Of a stretch of 64,000 nt of DNA, positions 3,522 through 28,242 are shown in pieces (position 1 is the stretch's first letter; every line of letters starts with the position of its first letter). The notes beneath the pieces are model-generated. The model was not told the origin of the DNA, ran no database searches, and saw only the letters and a list, made by a program, of their open reading frames with translations. Source of the stretch: Anthoceros angustus (lineage: Eukaryota; Plantae; Anthocerotophyta); assembly GCA_010909165.1 (NCBI GenBank), contig MU008158.1, positions 2,133,478 through 2,197,477 of the forward strand. Direction: 5' to 3'. The position numbers and the translations under genes were made by a program.

Positions 3522-6147
3522 TCACCCGGTGGTGAAGACACAAGTCCCAGTACCTGAGGAGCAGAAGCAGGAGCAGCACAGCACCAGAACCGGCCATCAG
3601 CAAAGCAGAAGGGAGGCATGACAACCATGAAAGCAACCAAATGACATCGAAGGAAGAAGCAGCAGCACACTTACTGGGATTGGTGATGGTGATGACCGCA
3701 TTCCCGTTGAAGAAGCAGTTCCAAGTGTTCCGCCCGTTCACCTGGTAGTACTGGTTCATGGCGAAGCTGGCGTGCGAGGCCAGCAGATCGGGCAGGAAGC
3801 AGGAGCCGCCTTGCTGGATCGGGGAGCAGTCCACCCCGGGCTCCCCGCACGCGTAGCTGAGCGCATTCACCAGGTCGCCCGCAGCCGCCCCGGGCTTGGC
3901 CACGCACCAGGTGGAGCCTGGGCCGGGGGAGGGCCCGGTGGGCGGATTTACCACCGGGGGTGGGTACACCGGGGCCACTGGCGCCGGGGGCGGGCTGTAG
4001 ACCACTGGAGGCGGGCTGTAGACAACGGGAGCGGGAGGAGGATTGTAGACAACAGGAGGAGCTGGAGGCGGATTGTAGACCACGGAGGGGCGGGGAGGCG
4101 GGGCTCAATACTTCGGGAGGAGGGGAGTGTAGACAGCAGGGGCAGGAGGAGGGGAGCGTAGACAGGGGAAGGAGGAGGAGGAGGGTAGGAGGCCTGGGAG
4201 CTGGGGCCTGGGCAGGGGATGCAGGAGCAGCACAGCACCAGAACCGGCCATCAGCAAAGCAGAAGGGAGGCATGACAACCATGAAAGCAACCAAATGACA
4301 TCGAAGGAAGAAGCAGCAGCACACTTACTGGGATTGGTGATGGTGATGACCGCATTCCCGTTGAAGAAGCAGTTCCAAGTGTTCCGCCCGTTCACCTGGT
4401 AGTACTGGTTCATGGCGAAGCTGGCGTGCGAGGCCAGCAGATCGGGCAGGAAGCAGGAGCCGCCTTGCTGGATCGGGGAGCAGTCCACCCGGGCTCCCGC
4501 ACGCGTAGCTGAGCGCATTCACCAGGTCGCCCGCAGCCGCCCCGGGCTTGGCCACGCACCAGGTGGAGCCTGGGCCGGGGAGGCCCGGTGGGCGGATTTA
4601 CCACCGGGGTGGGTACACTGGGCCACTGGCGCCGGGGGCGGGCTGTAGACCACTGGAGGCGGGCTGTAGACAGGAGCGGGAGGAGGATTGTAGACAACAG
4701 GAGGAGCTGGAGGCGGATTGTAGACCACGGAGGGGCGGGGAGGCGGCTCAATACTTGGGAGGAGGGGAGTGTAGACAGGGGCAGGAGGAGGAGCGTAGAC
4801 AGGGGAAGGAGGAGGAGGAGGGTAGGAGGCCTCGGGAGCTGGGGCCTCCGGGGCAGGGGCCTGGGCAGGGGCCTGGGCAGGGGATGCGGGAGCAGGGGAG
4901 GGGTACGATTCCTGCAGGAAGGGGCGGCCTGGGGCCGCGGGGATGGGGATGTCCGGGCCCAAGATGCCGGAATCGTAGACCGGGGTGGAGTCGGGGTAGA
5001 AGAGGCCGAAGTGGCGCTCGGAGCCGGGGCCGGGCTTGAGGTTCTCGTTGAAGAGGCTGAAGAGGTAGACGTCGAGGCCGGCGTCGGGGCGGGCGGGGGT
5101 GGAGACGTTGCTCTGCAGCCGCTTCACCAGGTTGTAGACGTAGGACTGCGCGTTCACCACATTGACGCCAACCTCGTCGGCGTCTCCCGCCCAGGGCCAG
5201 CCGGACTCGGACACCACCACGGCCAGGTTCACGATGCCGATGTTGGCCAGGGCGTAGTACACGGCGTCCACCTGCGCCGAGAAGAGGTTGGAGTAGTGGA
5301 TGCCGGTGCGGTTGTCCGTCTCGCCGTCGTTAGGTCCCTGCCCCAGGGCGTAGAGTCGGTCCTGCTCCGTGCGCTGCCCGTCGCGGTACGCGAAGTAGGG
5401 GTACGCGTTCACCATGAAGCTGGAGCCGGTGTGCACCAGGAAGGTGGCCAGGGGCGCCAGGAGCCGGGCCAGGTAGGGCTTGAAGACGGTGACGGAAGGC
5501 GGGAAGGACGGCGCCAGGATCTCCAGTGAGTGCGGGGTGGAGACCTTCACGGAGTAGTCCAGCTTCAGGTTCACCAGCGCCGTGTGGATGTTGGCCATGG
5601 CGGGGAGGAGGAGAGTGCGCATGCTGTCCGTGGTGTCGTTGCTCGTCAGCACCTCGTTCCCTACCGCGATGATGCGGATGTCCGTGGCCGGCATGAAGGC
5701 CTGGACGTGCCGCTCCACCCACTCCTGCGCGAAGCCGTGCACTCCCCGGGAGAGGCACTCGATCAGGTCGTTCGGCACTCCCACCACCACCTGGATCCCG
5801 CTGTTGGCGAACGCCTTGAGCACCGTCGGGTCCGTGTCGTAGATCTTCACCTTGCGCACCGTGGTCTTGAGGATGAGCGCCACCGCCTCCTCGGGGGTCG
5901 GCAGGTTGTTAGCCACCGTGCCGTAGTTGATGCCGAGGCTGCTTCCCGCCTCTGCACATGTGCAACAATTCCGTCACTTGTCCATCCCACAATGCAGCAC
6001 TGCGGCAGCGGCAACAACAACGAAATGCACGCGGCGTCTCTCACTCGAGAGTGTTGGACAGTTGCAATTACCTGCCAAGGAGATGACATTGGCGAGGCAC
6101 AAGCTGAGCAAGAGCAACAACGCCAAACTGCTTCCCCGAGCCTCCAT
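3522..6147 (-). CDS. Glucan endo-1,3-beta-glucosidase (GH17): signal peptide, GH17 domain, Pro/Tyr-rich extensin-like linker, X8 (CBM43) domain; 3' part duplicated and frameshifted in this sequence
   Basis: Exon 1 MEARGSSLALLLLLSLCLANVISLA (ATG at 6147). Exon 2 has LGINYGTVANNLP, AVGNEV and VSESGWP (both catalytic Glu) and FNENLKPGPGSERHFGLF. X8 motif WCVAK..ALSYACG..VDCSPIQQGGSCF.P..HASFAMNQYYQ. Last exon STGTCVFTTG* ends at 3522. Confidence 0.92.
3567..4885. repeat. ~654-bp tandem duplication of the linker, X8 exon and part of the last intron of the glucanase
   Basis: 3571 gagcagcacagcaccagaac... recurs at 4225. The copies differ mainly by 1-nt indels in G/C runs. Confidence 0.9.
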
Positions 6148-11135: not shown

Positions 11136-14100
11136 TCAATGCCGGTCACCACATAAACAAGACCCATCGATAAAGCGGTGCACCCGGTGGGCGTCTCTAA
11201 CTATGATTTCTCGTTTCTCCAGCCGAGACATGATCTTGGTGCTACTGTGGCAGTCGTCGCACATGCGCAGATTCTTGGTAACTAGCAGAGGAGTGCCAGC
11301 TGGGGTATTTAGAAGACCATATGCCAATGCAAGTTTTTCTGCATGCCCACATAATGCATCTACCTTCTGGCTGTCAGTCATAGACTTCAACACCAGCTCT
11401 TTCTTGGGCACATGGCCTCCCTCGTCCCTCACCTTCATGTTCATGGTTCTCAGGCCGGATGAAATATCAGCCCTACTTTCACCCACCGTGAACTCATGCA
11501 CTACGTTCTTCACTTCAATGCAAGCCTTCGCAGGCTTCTTCCAGGCTCCAGCAGCCTTTCTCAACATTTCTATTTCCTCCACATCCTCCCACCTGCCAGC
11601 AATGGCATATGTATAACCCAGGAGCACATATGCGGACGCATTGTCAGGCTCCAATTCAACCAGCCGGTCAAAACATCGTTTTGCCCGCACGACGTCACCA
11701 TGGTTCTTACAGGCACTCAGCAGAGATGTCCAACCAGCTGCACTACTTTCATATGGCATAGTCAGCAACAGGTTTTCTGCCTCATCTAATTGGCCAGAGC
11801 GTGCAAACAGGTCTACCATGCAAACATAGTGTTTGACAGTTGGCATGATGCCATTTTCATTCATCAGTAAGAAGTATCGCTGCCCATCAGTGATCCGGCC
11901 CGCGTGACTGCATGCCACTAGAAGACTCGTGAAGATCGCATCATCAAGCTTGACCCCGTGCTGCCGCATCTCATCGAAAAAATCCATGGCCACTTGGGCA
12001 TCACCATGTTCGGCATAGCCATTCAGCAGAGCGGTCCATGTCACTGCATCTTTCACGGACAATGTATCAAACACTCGCCGAGCTTCATCTAGGTCTGCGC
12101 ACTTCGCATACATATCCACCAAGCAGCTGCCGATAACCACATCAGATTCTAGACCTCGTTCCCGAACTTCGGCATGAAGCTGCTTTCCCTGATGCAACGC
12201 ACCGACAGAGGCACATGCTTGCAGAAGACAGATAATTGTGACATTATTAGCTGGAGTCATGCCATCCTCTAGCATTCGTGCATACAGAGCCAGGGCTTCC
12301 TGACCCATTCCCTGCTGTGCATATCCTGCAATAATAGAAGTCCATGTCACCACATCTCTTGTAAACAACGCATCAAACACTCTGCGAGCATCCTCTAAAC
12401 TGCCGAATTTTGCATACATGTCCACCAGGCAACTGCCAACAACCACATCAGCCTCCAGCCCTGCTTCCTGAATTTCTAAATGAAGCTTCCTGCCCTCAAG
12501 CACAGCTCCAGTGCTGGCACAAGCTTTCAAGAGGGATGCGTATGTTACGTGATCGGCTGAGATAATGCCTTCCTGCCGCATACAATCATAAAGGTCAAGG
12601 GCTTCTCGACCCATTTCCTGCTGTGCATACCCTGAGATCATGACGTTCCAGGTCACCACATCTCTTGTAGGCAGTCTGTCAAACACTTGACGAGCATCCA
12701 GTAAACTTCCACACTTTGCATACAGGTCCACTAGGCAACTGCCAATAAACACATCAGCTTGCAGGCCTTTCTTTTGGACCTCTGCATGAAGCTGCTTCCT
12801 GATGCAACGCACCGACAGAGGCACATGCTTGCAGAAGACAGATAATTGTGACATTATTAGCTGGAGTCATGCCATCCTCTAGCATTCGTGCATACAGAGC
12901 CAGGGCTTCCTGACCCATTCCCTGCTGTGCATATCCTGCAATAATAGAAGTCCATGTCACCACATCTCTTGTAAACAACGCATCAAACACTCTGCGAGCA
13001 TCCTCTAAACTGCCGAATTTTGCATACATGTCCACCAGGCAACTGCCAACAACCACATCAGCCTCCAGCCCTGCTTCCTGAATTTCTAAATGAAGCTTCC
13101 TGCCCTCAAGCACAGCTCCAGTGCTGGCACAAGCTTTCAAGAGGGATGCGTATGTTACGTGATCGGCTGAGATAATGCCTTCCTGCCGCATACAATCATA
13201 AAGGTCAAGGGCTTCTCGACCCATTTCCTGCTGTGCATACCCTGAGATCATGACGTTCCAGGTCACCACATCTCTTGTAGGCAGTCTGTCAAACACTTGA
13301 CGAGCATCCAGTAAACTTCCACACTTTGCATACAGGTCCACTAGGCAACTGCCAATAAACACATCAGCTTGCAGGCCTTTCTTTTGGACCTCTGCATGAA
13401 GCTGCTTACCCTGCTCCAATGCTTTGATGCTAGCACACGCTTTGAGCAGGCACATATAAGTTACAAGGTTGGGTTGCATAGAGCTGTCCTCTTGCATACT
13501 TGCATAAAGACTGAGGGCCTCTTGACCCAGCCCATGCTGAGCATAAGCTGTGATCATAGCATTCCATATCACCACATCTTTTGCTGGTAAACTGTCAAAA
13601 ACTCTGCGAGCATCCTGTAAGCTCCCGCACTTAGAATACATGTCTACCAAGCAGCTTCCCACGTACACGTTGGGTTCAACTTTACTCTTCGACATATCAG
13701 CATGGACTTCCTTCCCAGAGACCAAATCTGCTGCACCAGCACACGCTTTGAGGACAGCCACAAAAACATAGCTGTTCGGCTTCACCGCTGACTCTCGCCG
13801 CATTTGTCGATAGAGACCTATAGCTTGCACGAACTGGCCATGTTGAGCATGCGCTAAAATAATGGACTCCCACGTATGGTTGTCTGGTGCAGGCACCTTA
13901 CTGAAGACCTGGTTTGCCTCCTCCAACCTCCCATGCGAAGTATACATCCGTATGAGATGATTGGCAACGAATGCATCTGAATCATACCCACCCTGACCAG
14001 CAAGGGCGTGGATACGATTGCCAAGAACCAGATCCCTTTCTTCCATGCATCTCTTCAGCAGCCGACTGAAGACAGAGGTATCAACAGAGGATTTCACCTG

Positions 14101-14880
14101 CACCAGTTGGTCCAACGCCTCAACGGCATCCACTAGCTCTCCCTCCCAGCAAAGTCCTCGCGAGCCTTCATCCTCTGAATTCCCACTCAACCCAACTCCC
14201 AGTTCATCCAGCTTGGCGAGCTTCGTGTCCACCCAAGCAGGCTTGTGCGAGTTGTCCAGCCACAAACCCACCTTTGTCCTCTTGTGCTTGAAATCAGGAT
14301 GACGAGGGCTCCTCTTCTCTTTCCTATTGTCCCACCAGAGCGCAGGCTCGGAGAATAAGTCCTGCCACAAGAGCTCGTCTCGGCCTTCCTGCTCAACGGA
14401 CGAGGGTGAAGCTGCAGCATTGCCATTCCCAGACGACCTCTCTCCCACAGCTCCTGCTCTATGCCACCGCTTACTCCGACCTCCCCCTTGAGCATCCCAC
14501 GAAGCTAGCTGCGAATCCACCCACGCAGGCTTGTCTGCATTGTCCAGCCACAGTGCCTGCTGGAATGTCTTGTGCCTGAAGTCAGGATGGCGAGAGCTTC
14601 TCTTCTCCTGCCTGTTATCCCACCACTGAGTGGAACTTTTGAAGAATCCTCGCCACAAAACCTCCGGCACCTCGTTCTGCGCAACTCCTCCTTTGCCGTT
14701 CTTCAGTCCAGGAAACGCTGCGTGTATCTCACAACGACCCACACTTCCAGCCTTGCCTGGCGGGCAACTTGGGTACACGAATCCGCCATTAAATCCCACC
14801 CTCTTCTCGCCTGCATTTTCTGTCAGTGGGAAATTCGACGGCAACGCATCAACAGCAAAGCGTTGCTGCTTGACCGCCAT
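11136..14880 (-). CDS. PLS-class PPR protein with E1/E2 and DYW:KP (DRH-ending) domain and two N-terminal OSB-like PDF motifs; putative organellar U-to-C editing factor; split by a 610-bp duplication
   Basis: P-L-S triplets. WKKPAKACIEV (KP box) replaces the PG box. HAEKLA and CDDCH provide the Zn ligands. C-terminus is GSCLCGDRH. WWDNR..K...HPDF.HK...LWLD occurs twice. Removing one duplicate copy joins ORFs 12754..14898 and 11136..12854 in frame. Confidence 0.93.
12188..13407. repeat. 610-bp essentially identical tandem duplication inside the PPR gene (two PLS triplets) causing a frameshift
   Basis: 12191 gatgcaacgcaccgacagag equals 12801, and 12781 tctgcatgaagctgctt equals 13391. The offset is 610. 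Confidence 0.95.
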
Positions 14881-15119
14881 TCTCCCAGGACCTGGCAAGC
14901 CAGACAGGCAAAGGAAACGCTCGACATGTATGTGGTATCCGAATTATGTACATCAGGAATTCGCCCGGTACATACCTACATACTTAGGTGTGTATGACAA
15001 CAGCACACAGATTTGTGAAGAAATAAAACGCTTTTCTATTTCTAGGGCTTGCTTGCTGCTCTTCACATCCGGTGTGTGAGCTCGATTCCGGGCGGGAGCG
15101 TAATCCGAGCTTGGGCGCC

Positions 15120-19649: not shown

Positions 19650-21474
19650 CGCTCTTCGGTTCCGGTGTCCAATATGGGCTCGTCAACAAGCCCATACCAT
19701 AGCTCCTTTCGGATGCCCATATCGACATGATCTTCCAATGCCCCATGACCCATACCCCATGTCCTAAGTCACCGCGATACCCTGATGTGTCACGGTGTGC
19801 ATCCATGAGACTTGAGCCAAAGTGATGTCTCAAGAAAATTGGCTATTTGTCGCTTAATCATGTCGTGCTTTGTGCAGAATCTGGACCGGGCCAAGAAGGC
19901 CCGCTGTCAAACCGTTACTTGGCTGGATACCAACTACATATTTATCCTTATAGACTCAAATACCCATCCACTCACCCAAGATACTCTTCAGTGGTTCTCT
20001 CCTACCTCCGTGGCTGGTCAGTTCCACACAAACGTCCCATGGTTGTAATAGTCCCTTTGTTGCCAACAACGCCTCCGTCTATTATCAGGCCTCCTCCACT
20101 TTTGCAAGAGGAAGCCGATGGGCAGGAGGATATGGAGGCTTATGGGGTTTCGTTAGTTCAATTTTATGGTCCACTATCCGTGATGGAGGCAAACCGGGGG
20201 ACAAGCCCTGCGCTACTACATCCTGGAATTCAAATAACAATTTCTGAATTTGAGGATGTGTCTTGGCCTTACTTGTAACAATTTCTGAATTTGAGGATGT
20301 GTCTTGGCCTTACTTGTATTTGTGTCTCCAATTGGGGTTAACGTTATAGCTTCCCTCGCTAGGAAGGTGGTCGCGCCACTCTTCGCTTTCCTAACCTCCT
20401 TCGAGAATTTATGTTGGGTAAGTATCTGCACATGCACGCCCTCCACCATCCCATGCTTGTCAGGCTCCAGCTGTATTCGATGTTCCCTGCCTTGATGTGA
20501 GACCAACATCACCTTCTGTTCCCACTAGATCTGAGGGTTTAGGGCGGATTCGCATGAACCCACTTCCGGCTCTGTTCCGTAAGATTTTTAACGTGGCAGG
20601 GCGTCCTCATGTAAAGTAGCAAACCGAACCCGGAACTTTTCGCAGCAGGTCTCTGGTGTCTTCACACACGGGATTGAAGACATAAGCATGGCATTCTCGG
20701 CCGGTGCTCCATTGCTTCGAAATGGAGAGTCTCTACCATTGCTTGAAATGGAGAGTCTGCTACCATTGCTTGGAGGTCTCCTTGCAATAATTGATTCCTT
20801 TAATGCCATTGCTTTAAGGCCTCATCGTTGTAATTGCAGGTGACGGTCGACAAATGGTTCTTCTCCACTTGATGTAGATGCCCAATTCGAAGAATTAGAG
20901 ACCGTGTTGCACTCTTTACAGTATAATATCACAATGCTTCTAGCTCACTTGCAGCGTGTATCTCTCACCGAATGCTTCATGGGGTGCGATGCAGTATTAC
21001 ATTGCCGAGAGTGGATGGGCTTTTTTCCCTTCACCACAGAGAGTCTCACTTCTCCTGACACTGGCGGGCAGACCATAGACAATGCCTTTGATGACCAGTC
21101 CGGTAATGTTGTGGAGGAAGAAGCAAATCCTTGTGGTCGCTCCATCTTCCACTCCTAGGTTATCAAGAAGAATTGGTGCAAGTCATGAGCTCCTCTCAAA
21201 ATCGTGAGACTCGCGAGACAGGAGCTCCTCGCGAGATGTGAATTTGCAGATCTCGGTATTGAAGACCCAAAATGAACACCGGCTATACCCGGTCTGGATC
21301 ACGTCGTAGCTTCTTTCCGAGAACCGATTAAAACCACCTAAAAGCCCCCTCAGTAAACATAGGCGGGCCTTCCGTATGCTAATGATGGTCTCATGGCGGG
21401 CCCTTTTTCCGCCAAAATATCATTCCGGAAGCGGAGGTGCCCACATGCGAATCTGCCCTTATTATGCCCTCCAA
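19650..21474 (-). mobile_element. Highly degenerate Ty3/gypsy pol remnant (post-protease and RT region), left part
   Basis: Minus-strand EHRIQLEP (~20480), typical of the gypsy pre-RT linker, and faint RT-like fragments at 19650-20050. Colinear with the protease on the far side of the MULE. Confidence 0.4.
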
Positions 21475-21778
21475 GCCAGGCGCTAATGGTCACTGTGCTC
21501 TTAATGCGAGCACGGAAACCAAAGCGCCAACTCACCATGGTGAGCATGTCACATCGCAGCGGTCATGCCATGCTTTCATCTACTCTCCCGTTCGGCGCGA
21601 CAGCATTTCGCGCGCCCGTCACTGCTTCACTATAGCTATATCGTATGTACTATGTATTGTACTCATATGTCTACGTATTTCTGAACCCGTCTTTAGTTTG
21701 AAGAAGTGCAAACTCTGAAAGTGCCCTATCCCGCCATAGCGAGGCCGCTCCATAGCTGGCCGTGACCGAACTTGCGTA

Positions 21779-22525
21779 ATGAAGCTCGACTTGAACACGG
21801 TGGTCGCTCGGTTGGAGGAGGACGAGCCTACCAGCTAGCTTTTGTGCCTCTGCGCATCAACGCCTGATTACGATAGAGGCTCACATGTCTATAGAGGTTG
21901 CGTGAAATGTTTCATTGGTATCTCGCCGGGAGGGTGGTGTAAAAAATGTAAGGCTGTTGTGAATGGGCAAATGCAATACTCTTCGACTCCTCCTTGCGAT
22001 TCCGGTTGTGAGGCATGGGCGGCATTCACTCTTGGTAGAGATTTTATTAGGCTCACGGCTGAAGAGTTTAGCTTGAAGGAATTACGAGGAGAAGGTACAG
22101 AAGTCTTGGACCGGCTGCTGCACAAGAGTTTCCTGTGCCTCTTCTCCATCAAAAAGGCGTCAAGTCGACACCCTTCCAGCATCATCATTATAAGGGCTGA
22201 TGCAGTCTACATTCAGGAATTGTTCCCTGACCTTGGTGTGATGGACAACATAGCCAAGAATTTGCCACAATTCTGCACAGCTGCACAGACGCCTCTAATG
22301 CAAACAATTTCAGCTTTTCATGCGGACACAAATGAGTGCAGAGCCTCTGAAGACCTTGTGAGCAAACATGTGAACAAGCCTTTGTCAATTGTTGTGCCTC
22401 TTGTCGTTTGTTGTTCTCTGTCTATGGTTGTAACTATTGTGCTGGTTTCACTTCCAGCAAAGAGTCTTGCTGCGATATGTCTCGTAGTTTCTCTTGCAGC
22501 AATTATAGTGTTCAAGGTTTTGTAA
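21779..22525 (+). pseudogene. MULE second gene: RPA70 C-terminal (Rep_fac-A_C)/DDIAS-like zinc-ribbon OB-fold protein; in-frame TAG at 21836-21838
   Basis: ATG lies 4 nt inside TIR-L and is in frame with ORF 21842..22525. Sequence VYRGCVKCFIGI..WCKKC...QY....DSGCEAWAAF..G..FIRLTAEEF...LLHKSFLCLFSIKK follows the DBD-C pattern. Confidence 0.62.
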
Positions 22526-22636
22526 GCGGTCAAAGACACGAGCTGTCCAACGTAAATTACAAAGTGCCAAGTACAGTTGGTTCTCAATTCATGTCTTATG
22601 TGTCCATGTATCACAAATAGGCTTGGCATGCATTCC

Positions 22637-25081
22637 CTACCACATATTACGGAACAATGGTGTCCACTCGTCCAGCAAGCTCCACGAAAGTGGGCTGTTT
22701 CTTCTTAGATGGCAGCTTCCAAGTACTACTTCTTTCCCAAAAGCAAGCTTCCTTTTCAAAATTGTTATCCGGTTATATTGTCTTGGTAGTGTTGGAAGCA
22801 TGGTGTTACTTACTGCACCAGCTCCCATGCCCTCTAGTTGTCTGATCATTTGCTGGAATAAGCCCTTCGCGTGCTGCTCAAGAAAAGGCCACTTTTCCAA
22901 AACAAGTGTCAACTGCTGGCACAAAGCTTCCAAACTTGGAGACGTCTCCAATCTACCTATTGTGCACACGTTTGCTTGCTCAAGAACGAGAATACCAGTC
23001 TCACCTTGGCTACTTGTCCCCAAGCCACCGTCATGTGGGAGGAAATTCTCCCACATGGAAGTGTCCTCTTCATTACTGGGCAGAATGCTGTGTTGGAACT
23101 CAGTTTGAGCAACTGCAACCTCGGAATACCTAACAACCAGCTTTTGAGTGGGGACTACCTTGTCCATGAGCAACATAACCTTGAGCTGGTGTTTGCACAT
23201 GAAACCTCGCGTCCCTTGCTTACATGTACAATAACCCCAAGGGGTTCCAGCACCACTCACAATATATCTACGTGCTTTCCCATTGTCCTGACTATTGACA
23301 TAAGCAATATTTGGAGAGTCTAGAGTTGGTAAGACCACATGGCTATCTAATATGGCTGTTGCTTTTTGGAGAGCACTCCGCACAATGTCCTCTTGCTTGG
23401 AATTTCGAAGCATGCCAACTGCCTTACACTGGGCTACATACCAAAAGTGCCTGTTAACCTCTTCGAACAAAATATGCAGCAGCCAATCCAATCGCCGATT
23501 ACGAAGGGTTTTCTTGGAGAGCAAACATCTGTACTTCAGATGTTTGTGATATGCTTCTATGGACGAGTTGCAGTCTTGTCCGGCATGTGGAATTGTCCTA
23601 ACCGCTTTAATCCACTGTAGCATGTTAGAACCCCACTGGTCTTTAAAATACTTCACAAAGCGCTAGCGAGACTCACGGAAGGTAGCATAAAATAGTTCAA
23701 GTCTTTGGCATGCTTGGTTTACCTCTACCCGACATCAATGTCCATATGCATGATGTCACCTAAGGATTTCATAATTGCATGCACGGTGTGGTGCCTTCAC
23801 CTTTTTAGCAATTGCGGCCAAGCCCTCCGAACATGCCATAGACACAAGAAAACCAGTACGTTACTTCCAAACACAGCCTTGATGCCATTAATTTCCGCCA
23901 TACAATCGTCTACCAGAAAAGCGGTCGGTTGCCAATCTGCCCTATGTAGCAGCATCCTTGCTCGTAAGCATTCCAGCCACTGTGAAATATTGGCTGCCGT
24001 AGCCTTGCTGGTAATCACCCAAGCGACAAGGATACCGTTAAAATGATCGTCAAAAACCAACAGAGTGAATAGCTGGAACTTCCACTTATTGGTGCCAAAT
24101 GTGGCATCCATAGATATCACTGACTTGTGACCCCAACGCAACATGGATCAGAATCGAAAACTGCTTTTGGATGCCTAACATGAAATCCTTGGCATGCTGT
24201 TCTTCTCCCGGCAAAGGAAAAAATACCTCCTCCCTATGGACATCCATCCACAACTTGACACTCACCTCATCGTTTACATGGAATCGCCACACCCTGGACT
24301 CCAACTCTGCCTGCAAATTTCTTATGTCTCTAGGCAGCAAAAAATCATCCCGCTCAAGGACTGCTTGCAAATCACTATGCTTCCTTAAAAACACCTCAGA
24401 CTCATGGTCAATTAGGATCTGAAAAGCAGTCGTCTTTCGTAGCAACTTATACTTCACCCACTCCTTCTTAGCTGTGGACAGGTAAGGAGCAAGGGTACAA
24501 TTTGAAGCTGAATCACTCGCTAGCAAACCATGACAATACTCTCCCGTTGAATTAATGTGCTCCCTTTGATGTAGTCTCAGTTCAGCAACCTCAGGAAACA
24601 TCTCCAGTGTTACAAACAACAAAAACTGGCACCCACGTTTCTTGCTTTCTCCACAGGCAATCTTGGAGCGCCTGCTCCCTTTGCCTAACTTCGGCTTGTT
24701 AGTGATGTCCGCACAAACTGCAGAATCCAGAGGAGTTTGCTTTCGGTAGCCATAAGCACAGGCAAACTTGATGTAGTGCCGAGGAGTGGTAGATGAAATT
24801 CCTCTTTGCCTCACACCAGATCTGGTCCAAACATTGGCCCTTATCAATTTGGTGGGGAAGAACGTCGACTTCTCTTCGCCAGCAATGAAATCTGGGTACC
24901 TCGTCCAGGGAATGTAACAACGTTTCACACGAGTCACCGTCTGCCGGACAAGATGCTCACCATCCTGCCAATTCAATGTCTCCTTACAAAAAAGACCGGG
25001 ACCCGGATTCTGCACTTCAAAAGGGCAAGGTTGAGGCAGGATGGGGGCACCCACAGGCCTTCTCGGAATTGATTCATCCAT
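22637..25081 (-). pseudogene. MULE DDE transposase with SWIM zinc finger, broken into three ORFs (24086..25081, 23797..24144, 22637..23656)
   Basis: MDATFGTNK (D), FLVDDC (D), CLWHVRRAW (CxxH), CNSSIEAYH (E), SWIM CTCKQG...MCKH. Confidence 0.9.
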
Positions 25082-25388
25082 AAAATCTACGAGATTGTCT
25101 TCTCTGCAAGTTCGGTCACGGCCAGCTATGGAGCCTGGCCTCGCGAGCGCGCGGGATGAGTTCGCACTTCTTCAAACTAAAGACGGGTGTAGAAATACGT
25201 AGACATATGAGTATAATACAGAGTACATACGATATAGCTATAGAAGATGTGGCGCGCGAAATCTGTCATGAGCAGGAGAGTAGATGAAAGCATGGCATGA
25301 CCGCTGCGATGTGACATGCTCACCATGGTGAGTTGGCGCTTTGGTTTCCGTGCTCGCATTAAGAGCACAGTGACCATTAGCGCCTGCG

Positions 25389-25700
25389 GCCCTCCAACCA
25401 CTCCATACCTAAGATCACATCACGTTCCTCCTATAGAGGAGTCACTGTACAAGTAATTACATATTGGAGTGACCCTAAGTGAAGGTGCAGGGGTTTACTC
25501 TGCGTACTAGGTGTAGCAGACTGCTCACCGTTGGCATAAGTGACAAACCCTAAGGACATCCCCGCATCTAAGTCATTCTGCTTAGCAAATCTCAAAGCCA
25601 TAAAGTTGCATCTTGCACCATAGTCTATTAACACTCGAGATGGATGTTGGTTTACCTTTCCTAGCATCCTGAGTAACCCTCAAATCTTACGACCCTGCTG
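25389..25700 (-). mobile_element. Ty3/gypsy aspartic protease remnant (target of the MULE insertion)
   Basis: GKVNQHPSRVLIDYGARCNFM (degenerate LIDSGAxxNF), VTYANG, and DVILGMEWLE running up to the TSD. One in-frame stop. Confidence 0.75.
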
Positions 25701-26055
25701 GGGATTGGAAGTACATTTCATGACTGCTCCCCCTGTAGCAGCCATGCCGGCTAGTTTCCCGGGCTCGGATACCTGCCTTAACTTTATTCACTTGAGCCCT
25801 ACGCACTTCTGGACAAAAGGGAGGACGCCCTCAAACTCTCCCCTCACGAGGAGGGCCCTTAAGGCAACTCCCTGCACAGTGCCCCCATTCCCCACTACTG
25901 AAACACCGGCCATGGAACTCCTGTACTTAATTAATGATAATTTTACTTATCTGAATAATTCATTAATGCAGAATTTAATGTTCCAAACTTTTAAATATAT
26001 TATGACTTCAAGCTAATTTTTTTCCAAAAAAATAAACAAATTTAAAATGTATGTA

Positions 26056-26330
26056 TTACGACTTCAAGTAATATTGTTTCGACTTCAAGCATACTTCAAG
26101 TAACTTGCTTGAAGTCGAAACAATCTTACCTGAAGTTGAACAATCTTGCTTGAAGTCCAAATAATCTTGAAGTTTGCCTGAAGTGGAAACAATCTTGTTC
26201 GAGCAAGGTTGTTCCCACTTCAGGCAAACTTGTTCCAACTTCAAGAAAGATTGTTTCAACTTCGAGCAACATTAGAACCGGTTGATTAGATCTTCCAAGC
26301 TTATAAAAGAATTGCAGCCTCAAGCAATGT
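26056..26330. repeat. Degenerate short tandem repeats built from CTTCAAG / CTTGAAG / AACAATCTT words
   Basis: Repeated tgaagtNgaaacaatctt and acttcaag words in an AT-rich context. Confidence 0.6.
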
Positions 26331-26940
26331 CATTCATTCTATTTGCTTAGCCTATACAAATCGACGGGTCTATCATTCTTTCAAAGTACACATATATAGT
26401 ATAAAATTAATAACTAATTGTTTTTTGGATTAAGAAGGGGACTTGGCCATGGAGAAGGTCAACAAAGATCTAGAGATTGTCTTCGGCCGCCATGGTCTTG
26501 TAATTCATGATCGTGCCAATGCACAAGCTTCACCAAGCGATAATTTCGAACGACTTCTTAAAGTTCTTGAAGAAGGTCAGTCCGTCGATATCGGCATGAT
26601 TTTCGGACGTAATGAAACATCTCAAGTTCTTGAAGAGGGTGACAACGTCCAAATTAACGAGGCATCGGATGATGGAACATCTCAAGTTCGTAAAGAAGGT
26701 TATAGTGTCCAAAAGGATGTGGCACTTGATGGACCACCTCATTGTCCAAAGGATGATCATCCTCGTAAGTCTGCATCAACAAGACTTCATTATGTGAATT
26801 CCATCATGAACCTGGATTTTAAACTTCTCTGAAACAATTATTCAAATCCATAGGATTTAGCAATATTATATTCGTAAATTTGATGTGTTGGCTTTTACAA
26901 TAAAAAAAGTTGTAGTAGTTGAAAGTGTTTTTTTATGTAG

Positions 26941-27400
26941 GCACAAAAGAGGAACAAGAAAAGTCACTAAAGGCCAACAATGTTAAAGGACGACCTACCC
27001 AAGAGTGCGGAGAAGATAACAAAGCTGAAGGTGATGAAGGACGATCTATGGAAGAGTCCAAGAGAGAAGATAACAAAGCCAAATATGTTGAAGGACGACC
27101 TATCGAAGAGTCAAAGAGAGAAGATAATAAAGCCGAAGATATTGGAGAACAACTTGTTGAAGAGTTCAAGAGTGAAGATAACAAAGCCCAACATGTTGAA
27201 GTCCGACCTATAAAAGAGTCAAAAGAGAAAATAACAAAGCCAAAGATGTTACATGACGACCTATCGAAGAGTTCAAAAGAGAAGATAACAAAGCCGAAGA
27301 TGTTGAAAGGGGACCTATCGAAGAGTCCAAAGGAGAAGAAATCAAAACCAAAGATGTCGAAGGACAACATATCGAAGAGTCTAAAAGAGAAGTTAACGTT
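26941..27400 (+). repeat. 54-bp tandem array (~7-8 units) encoding 18-aa E/K-rich repeats; possible exon of a degenerate gene
   Basis: Unit aagagtccaagagagaagataacaaagccaaatatgttgaaggacgacctatcg translates to EESKREDNKAKYVEGRPI. Flanked by ttttatgtag (26940) and gtaagt (27401). Confidence 0.8.
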
Positions 27401-28242
27401 GTAAGTGCTAAATTTTGCATGCTGAATTTACAATCATAAAGTTCTAGTCATGGTTGAAAGTGTTTTTTTTAAGTCGCAAATTTTTTTCTTATAAATTACC
27501 AAAAAACTATTGTCTTATAATTCACCAATAGAAAAGTGTTATAATTCAAAAACAAATCTTAAAATTGGTTGAAAATAGTTTTTTCTTATAAATCGTAAAA
27601 GATTAGTGTTTTCTTATAATTCATCAATAAAATTATGTTTATTTTAATTCACAAAAAATATTTTTTATAACTCACTAAAAATAGTCTTCTTATAATTTTC
27701 GAAAAATATCATTTTTTATTATTTTTCAAAAAATAAATATTTTCTTATATAGGCGCAGAGGTAGAATGAAAAATGTCACTACAAACTGAACATGTTAAAG
27801 GACGACCGACCCATTCAAGGATCTGTCCATTGCCCAGGGATGGACTTTAGGATTTACTGTCCACCGTCCATTGGCTAGGGATAGACTTATGTGCAGAATC
27901 TCGGTCCAGGAGTTTCCTTTGCCTAATAAGGAAAGCACGAGAAAGGTACACGAGGGCTTCCATTTTCCGTTGTGCGAGCCTCACACTCTTCCCAATTTAC
28001 AAATCTACACACACTGTGGATGCGATGGGTTTGAAGGGAAGTGCTATGCTGGTAGTGGCGGCAGCCATGAACCTGCCCCGGGGATCGGCACTATAGCTAC
28101 TGCACAAGCCAACGACAGGTTTCTTTCCAGCTAGTTCTCCCAGGTGCAAGTCGACGGCAGGCTCCTGTATTAATGAACCGTGCTTGGGGAGAACCGATAA
28201 AAAATGTTATAAAACAAACAATTCTCAGCTCAGATGTCATCT

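Follow-up and report, generated by a model that had tools for sequence, protein, structure and literature searches.

A Dead MuDR-Like Element in a Hornwort Genome and Its Second Gene, a Candidate for a Very Diverged RPA70C-Type Domain

Introduction

The locus described here raises the question of what the second gene of a plant Mutator-like element (MULE) encodes when its product resembles nothing in the sequence collections at hand. The locus lies in a 64,000-nt stretch of the genome of the hornwort Anthoceros angustus (GenBank assembly GCA_010909165.1, contig MU008158.1, positions 2,133,478 to 2,197,477 of the forward strand; herein referred to as the window, whose own numbering is used throughout) and consists of a 3,914-nt (3.9-kb) element at 21475-25388 that contains a transposase gene and, convergent with it, a second open reading frame (ORF2). 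An initial annotation, made from the DNA letters alone, had proposed that ORF2 specifies an oligonucleotide-binding (OB) fold of the type found in RPA70C and DDIAS.

Accessory genes (MURB, VANC, and ULP1-like) govern the integration of Mutator elements and their escape from silencing, and to our knowledge few of the accessory genes carried by MULEs have a known biochemical activity. If it were an RPA70C-type binder of single-stranded DNA (ssDNA), a cut-and-paste element would have independently recruited a host replication and repair module that is carried by rolling-circle Helitrons, and both kinds of transposition would appear to be vulnerable at the same point, namely at ssDNA or gap-repair intermediates. 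Transposon-borne RPA-like genes would additionally extend beyond the monocots and dicots that make up the angiosperm range of the Helitron RPA-like genes, and no RPA-like accessory factor would have been described from a cut-and-paste transposon before ORF2, as far as the literature that we searched shows. If ORF2 were merely an orphan, the locus would be an ordinary one, a decayed MULE whose second gene is specific to its lineage.

The autonomous-type Mutator-like element that we find at 21475-25388 has a MuDR-like build and is a dead copy. Our best explanation of the locus as a whole, which we regard as evenly poised between right and wrong, is that this dead element carries an element-borne, very diverged ORF2 of the RPA70 DNA-binding domain C (DBD-C) type.

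A Mutator-Like Element with a MuDR-Like Build

The boundaries of the element are set by inverted repeats of ~300 nt each. A self-comparison of the window pairs 21477-21775 with 25106-25386, and these terminal inverted repeats (TIRs) differ by only 2 mismatches in their outer 117 nt; over their full length (~300 nt) they share 87-88% identity, and all indels fall in their inner half. The left repeat, TIR-L (21475-21775, plus strand), is supported by the inverted-repeat pairs I1, I2, and I4 and by a local alignment with 88% identity over 301 columns, and the right repeat, TIR-R (25106-25388, minus strand), by the same inverted-repeat and local-alignment evidence. Both contain a TATA-like 11-mer ~150 nt upstream of the respective start codon (TATAGCTATAT at 21631-21641 in TIR-L, with the mirrored motif at 25232-25242 in TIR-R). 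The same 9-mer, GCCCTCCAA, adjoins both ends of the element as a perfect 9-bp target-site duplication (TSD), its left copy at 21466-21474 abutting position 21475 and its right copy at 25389-25397 abutting position 25388. A 32-nt terminal pattern occurs within the 64 kb only at the two ends of the element (chance expectation 0), and self-BLAST places the element in the window as a single copy. Short matches upstream of the element (pairs I8 and I9) were not reproducible and were dismissed as chance.

Long TIRs, a TSD within the 8-11 bp range, and a transposase domain of Pfam family PF10551 place the element in the Mutator superfamily. Helitrons are recognized by a RepHel protein and by the lack of TIRs and of a TSD, whereas TIRs, a TSD, and a DDE transposase are all present here. 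A Helitron nested inside the MULE was also considered and rejected, there being no space for one between the edge of the TIR and the start codon. A Mutator element inserted at 21475-25388 and generated a 9-bp duplication, and both of its genes are now broken.

The transposase is encoded on the minus strand and is split into three pieces in different frames, which, like the stop-separated pieces of ORF2, were searched separately. It starts at 25081, with an ATG 25 nt inside TIR-R. The N-terminal piece (24152-25081, minus strand) aligns with the N-terminal ORF of a related locus, L001, at 26% identity over 228 aa and ends at a frameshift near 24168-24152. The second piece (24147-23800, minus strand), in another frame, holds the MULE catalytic domain: it matches PF10551 with an E-value of 6.4e-11 (43 bits against a 27.6-bit cut-off), also matches the related ZSWIM1-3 RNaseH-like domain of Pfam, and ends at an in-frame TGA (23797-23799). 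A second frameshift falls between 23740 and 23659, and the C-terminal piece follows (22637-23662, minus strand, with its stop at 22637-22639), sharing 39% identity over 165 aa with both L001 and a second related locus, L002. This last piece carries a SWIM-type motif (C-x-C...C-x-H) at 23177-23230, for which the Pfam SWIM match is weak (E 0.028, below the cut-off) and in which neither the cysteines nor the histidine vary when relatives are aligned (alignment A1).

The relatives in question comprise eight loci of public collections (L001-L008), with transposases 22-39% identical to that of the window; L001 and L002 derive from metagenome assemblies of ENA, the other six (L003-L008) from metagenomes of JGI. 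The damage was located by aligning the ORFs of L001 to the window copy, and in two other relatives (L004 and L007) the matching N-terminal and MULE-domain parts run on in one continuous frame. Set against L001 and against the single frame of L004 and L007, the frameshifts, of which there are at least two, and the TGA mark the transposase gene as a pseudogene, and by this comparison with relatives we take the breaks to be real damage and not introns. The initial annotation had not recorded that the transposase is broken. It had otherwise described a MuDR-style two-gene element with genes pointing inward from the TIRs, a description that is borne out by the long TIRs, the 9-bp TSD, the PF10551 domain, the SWIM-type motif, and the convergent ORF2, and both of the start codons that it named (25081 and, 4 nt inside TIR-L, 21779) were confirmed at those coordinates.

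ORF2 Is Probably a Gene of the Element

ORF2 lies on the plus strand, convergent with the transposase, and starts at the second of these codons. A leader of ATG and 18 further codons (21779-21838, plus strand) runs into a TAG at codon 20 (21836-21838), the premature stop that had been noted from the outset, and is followed by the main open frame (21839-22525, plus strand) of 228 codons and a stop, for which we could detect no relative by sequence. The stop codons of ORF2 and the transposase are only 111 nt apart, so that the element is practically without spare DNA.

An intron that would excise the TAG was considered and rejected, the sole GT...AG pair being ~39 nt apart, which is below the size of plant introns. 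The TAG could have originated by a C-to-T transition at a CAG codon, in CHG context; we conjecture that such an origin would fit the methylation-driven decay of a silenced element.

To score coding potential, we used a codon-usage model trained on the host genes of the window. By this measure the ORF2 frame has the best score of the six frames in the leader, the core, the middle, and the tail alike. Once the advantage enjoyed by any stop-free frame is subtracted, its overall score is 0.024, which falls between the extremes of the three transposase pieces (-0.02 to 0.07) and exceeds those of 98.5% of stop-free frames drawn from composition-matched random sequence (z ~1.9). On the strength of these codon statistics, together with its mirror-image placement with respect to the TIRs, we take ORF2 to be a gene, present or former. 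That it is, or once was, a real gene of the element is in our estimation probable. That it is an integral gene is favoured by the position of its ATG at the edge of the TIR, by the way in which it fills a compact element, and by statistics that are coding-like throughout.

Identity of the ORF2 Product

The proposal of an RPA70C-type domain originates in motifs, which the translation of ORF2 contains as initially described. A four-cysteine, zinc-ribbon-like motif (Y-x2-C-x2-C-x8-W-C-x2-C, equivalent to a C-x2-C-x9-C-x2-C ribbon) is located at 21890-21949 on the plus strand and is followed downstream by the string D..W..F..G..F..LTAEEF...KSF; a pattern search of the six-frame translation of the window finds the strict form of the cysteine motif this one time. 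The order of elements in ORF2 resembles that of human RPA70 DBD-C: it begins with a hydrophobic strand, Y-x2-C, the ribbon, and an aromatic-rich strand and continues with a helical segment ('AEE'), a strand with K-S-F, an isoleucine-rich strand, and a helix at the end. We treat this likeness as a lead only.

The motif-based prediction is echoed by a language-model feature search. With ORF2 residues 1-130 as the query, and likewise with residues 12-150, all of the listed clusters that had a Pfam annotation belonged to PF08646 (Rep_fac-A_C), and these neighbouring clusters were mostly from Streptophyta. This signal carries weight because it matches the family predicted beforehand from the motifs and does so at two choices of boundary, and it is limited in that both runs used one and the same cysteine-rich sequence. 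The low-confidence structural models of ORF2 are not at odds with a Rep_fac-A_C domain, their strands being followed by two helices, then by a pair of strands and a helix at the C-terminus.

A number of results weigh against this identification. The language-model scores (0.84-0.88) lie under the 0.9 bar of the tool, and the number of shared features (131-151, as compared with 170 typical of true family members) falls into the class that the tool designates 'chance hits or distant relatives'. Profile searches gave nothing: Pfam returned no match for the whole of ORF2 at a limit of E<=1 or for its core at E<=10 (the filters of HMMER discard most matches above E~0.1, so a very weak Rep_fac-A_C match could escape), and an NCBIfam search of ORF2 was also without a match at E<=10. 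Neither Zf-GRF nor any other Pfam domain was matched. Pairwise searches were equally unproductive. A phmmer search of all PDB sequences, RPA70 structures among them, found no RPA with either the whole ORF2 or its core, the best matches being a response regulator, Mlh1, and MsrB, all with E>1; an exhaustive phmmer search of 1.84 billion representative proteins returned 0 ORF2 matches at E<=0.001, and a word-indexed search of 5.8 billion proteins returned 0 matches for the whole and the core. Scans with back-translated ORF2 likewise gave 0 matches in contigs of metagenomes, viruses, and prokaryotic genomes, none of the three ATG-started ORFs of the element has an exact-sequence entry in the collection searched, and an ORF2-like sequence was found in none of the eight related loci by tblastn or by a regular expression for the zinc ribbon. 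ORF2 is, in short, without any detectable relative in the collections searched.

Structure prediction, by which the initial annotation had proposed to check for an OB fold (AlphaFold with Foldseek), gave evidence neither for nor against one. The single-sequence AlphaFold models have a mean predicted local distance difference test (pLDDT) of 41.5 for the whole of ORF2 and 36.7 for residues 1-150 (that is, 37-41), and Foldseek against the PDB and an Atlas shape search with the ORF2 model returned noise only. The pLDDT rises above 60 only in the C-terminal tail, in helices 185-204 and 207-227. This tail (22379-22522, plus strand) comprises the last ~48 residues and forms two strongly hydrophobic, transmembrane-like segments (Kyte-Doolittle 19-residue means up to 2.8), a feature that is odd for a nuclear ssDNA-binding factor. 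The tail may be genuine, may be spliced out, or may be the product of an undetected frameshift in the decayed copy.

Set against these results is the speed at which such proteins diverge. The RPA-like proteins of plant Helitrons are only ~21% identical among themselves (PMC4683698), so a diverged and decayed member of this kind could evade all sequence searches. The initial annotation had held that the lack of an OB-fold match would refute its claim, and no such match came from any of the alignment-based or structure-based tests that were run; the one result in agreement with an RPA70C/DDIAS OB fold is the sub-threshold family resemblance of the language-model neighbours. Weighing both, we put the chance that ORF2 is an RPA70C-type domain at even or slightly better.

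Proposed Role of ORF2

The element comprises two ~300-bp TIRs, each directly upstream of an inward-facing gene, namely a MULE/SWIM transposase on the minus strand and an ORF2 of ~250 codons on the plus strand. Judging from the layout of the element and from the known behaviour of MuDR, both genes would have been transcribed inward from TIR promoters, and ORF2 would have served the element as a genuine, element-borne accessory gene and not as a captured fragment. Its product would most likely have been a single, very diverged Rep_fac-A_C-type zinc-ribbon domain followed by a linker and the hydrophobic tail. MURB is needed for reinsertion and binds the N-terminus of MURA (PMC12973397). On this analogy we speculate that the ORF2 protein might have bound ssDNA or gapped DNA together with the transposase at excision, integration, or gap repair.

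In its fullest form this proposal states that a Mutator family of a seed-free land plant has recruited, as its TIR-driven accessory protein, a standalone, highly diverged zinc-ribbon OB domain of the RPA70 DBD-C type, here fused to a tail resembling a membrane anchor. We advance this full form tentatively, as a possibility with appreciably less than even prospects.

Alternative Explanations

Three other accounts of ORF2 need to be weighed. According to the one that survives best, ORF2 is a real, lineage-restricted accessory gene, an orphan in the manner of MURB or VANB/VANC, whose product (a generic four-cysteine ribbon with an anchor-like tail) is neither an OB fold nor related to RPA. The failure of profile, pairwise, and structural comparisons to find RPA is what such an orphan would produce, the language-model neighbours stay within the range that the tool marks as 'lead only', and the hydrophobic tail sits poorly with RPA-type proteins. 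Known accessory ORFs of MULEs are, moreover, lineage-specific orphans (PMC6446971). A chance language-model neighbour would, however, be unlikely to repeat the family predicted from the motifs at different boundaries, and we judge this account unlikely.

Less likely again, and in our view distinctly improbable, is that ORF2 is a passively captured fragment, in the style of a Pack-MULE, of an RPA70C-like gene from the host, a Helitron, or a CACTA element, with no role in transposition. MULEs often capture gene fragments (PMC6446971), and ORF2 would equal just one OB domain of an RPA70-type protein. The relatives of the element bear on this account as well. L002 contains, convergent with and downstream of its related MULE transposase, a 398-aa ORF (L002:1805-3001, minus strand) that has no Pfam match and whose only PDB match, a weak one (E 0.42), is to a Ulp1-like SUMO protease (6dg4_A), in which the motifs H-W-T-L and Q...W-x-C-G line up. 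This ORF and ORF2 show no similarity. The aligned motifs suggest that L002 is a relative of the KI-MULE type, with a protease taking the place that ORF2 has in the window element, and that this accessory position may change its occupant within the clade of the window element and its relatives. That the closest relative within reach seems to hold a different, Ulp1-like gene here speaks for capture. A Pfam search of 15 other ORFs from the related loci yielded nothing useful.

Several observations speak against capture. No similarity to canonical or Helitron-type RPA was found among the 1.84 billion representatives, which argues against recent capture of a conserved RPA1, and no protein or DNA similar to ORF2 that could represent its parent gene was found in the public collections searched. 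The capture of an ordinary host RPA1 exon, which the initial annotation had held out as the alternative to its own proposal, is therefore unlikely, ORF2 being unlike any canonical RPA70. A donor of another kind, a fast-evolving RPA-like gene borne by a transposon, is conceivable. ORF2 also extends from 4 nt past TIR-L to the 3' end of the transposase, leaving no flanking fragment of a donor, and is coding-like in codon score from end to end. Pack-MULEs are defined by the lack of a transposase gene, whereas here one is present, though broken.

That ORF2 is no gene, its 228 codons being open only by chance within the non-coding interior of a decayed MULE, is the least probable account and in our view very improbable: no homologue turned up in any collection searched, the window has 20 open frames of at least 228 codons, some of which are not genes, and the codon-score advantage is modest at z ~1.9, but the position and orientation of ORF2 mirror those of the transposase with respect to the TIRs, its frame outscores the other five in each of the four segments, no more than 1.5% of random open frames reach its score, and its language-model neighbours are consistent.

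Other Features of the Window and the Related Loci

The window belongs to the nuclear DNA of a land plant, and the products of its largest open frames are PPR and PPR-E-DYW proteins, a glycosyl hydrolase of family 17, and a protein with an exportin-type repeat. On the minus strand at 11139-14943, two long open frames, each in a different reading frame, share ~110 nt; the one lying upstream (729 codons) consists entirely of PPR repeats, and the downstream one (576 codons) combines PPR repeats with an E motif and a DYW deaminase. They could be neighbouring genes or the parts of one very long PPR-DYW gene that a frameshift has split. The glycosyl hydrolase family 17 gene (4522-5973, minus strand; E 2.5e-74) resides in a GC-rich island (GC 0.66; third-position GC 0.86). 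The transposon genes lie far lower, at about 0.44-0.50, and the codon usage of host and element hence differs strongly.

Directly to the right of the element, 25995-26273 is densely filled with units of 23-34 nt that share the core TTGCTTGAAGTCGAAACAATCTT and occur in direct and inverted orientation. This cluster sits in an AT-rich stretch (GC 0.35 over 26001-28000) and may be a small foldback array or one resembling miniature inverted-repeat transposable elements.

Inverted-repeat arrays also bracket the MULE-domain part of the transposase in five of the related loci (L003:2888-5618, L004:1724-4366, L005:1789-4571, L006:2114-4899, and L007:7312-9992). Their arms of 80-250 nt are 80-88% complementary and ~2.2 kb apart, and the match to the C-terminal part of the transposase lies just outside them. 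These arrays may be repeat-rich introns or nested elements.

Comparison with Known Systems

Among known transposons, maize MuDR provides the closest parallel in overall build. Both elements have TIRs of considerable length (~200-300 bp) and a TSD of 9 bp, and in both a transposase gene of the MULE DDE type faces a convergent second gene, the two genes starting at the inner edges of the TIRs. Unlike MuDR, the window copy is dead, and its transposase is a distant one with relatives known so far only from moss-type metagenome contigs (22-39% identity). The second gene differs as well, ORF2 having no match at E<=0.001 in 1.84 billion representatives, a set that was not checked for the presence of MURB.

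The extra ORFs known from MULEs are mudrB, mutB, vanB/vanC, and ULP1-like genes (PMC6446971). Plant MULEs commonly carry accessory proteins of diverse kinds, some having zinc-ribbon nucleic-acid-binding domains, and Zf-GRF is one of the accessory domains that recur in active plant TIR transposons (PMC12973397). KI-MULEs, which carry a ULP1-like Peptidase_C48 gene, resemble the window element in combining a MULE transposase with one accessory gene, and they differ from it in that the accessory position of the window element is occupied by ORF2 and contains no protease. A Mutator element that carries an RPA-like gene did not come up in the literature searched, the coverage of which is incomplete, so this is no proof of novelty.

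The systems that bear most directly on the preferred identification of ORF2, as a very diverged RPA70 DBD-C-type domain, are the plant Helitron RPA-like proteins (PHRPA) and the wider PF08646 family, including its standalone domains of the DDIAS type. PHRPAs belong to a fast-evolving family and have been reported only from monocots and dicots (PMC4683698). ORF2 stands apart from them in its carrier, a cut-and-paste TIR element with a TSD and not a rolling-circle Helitron, and in its architecture, since it has at most one domain where they have several OB folds, fails the Pfam model, and ends in a hydrophobic tail. What it has in common with them is a four-cysteine ribbon within a transposon-borne, candidate ssDNA-binding domain, and it is in PF08646 that the nearest language-model neighbours of ORF2 are found.

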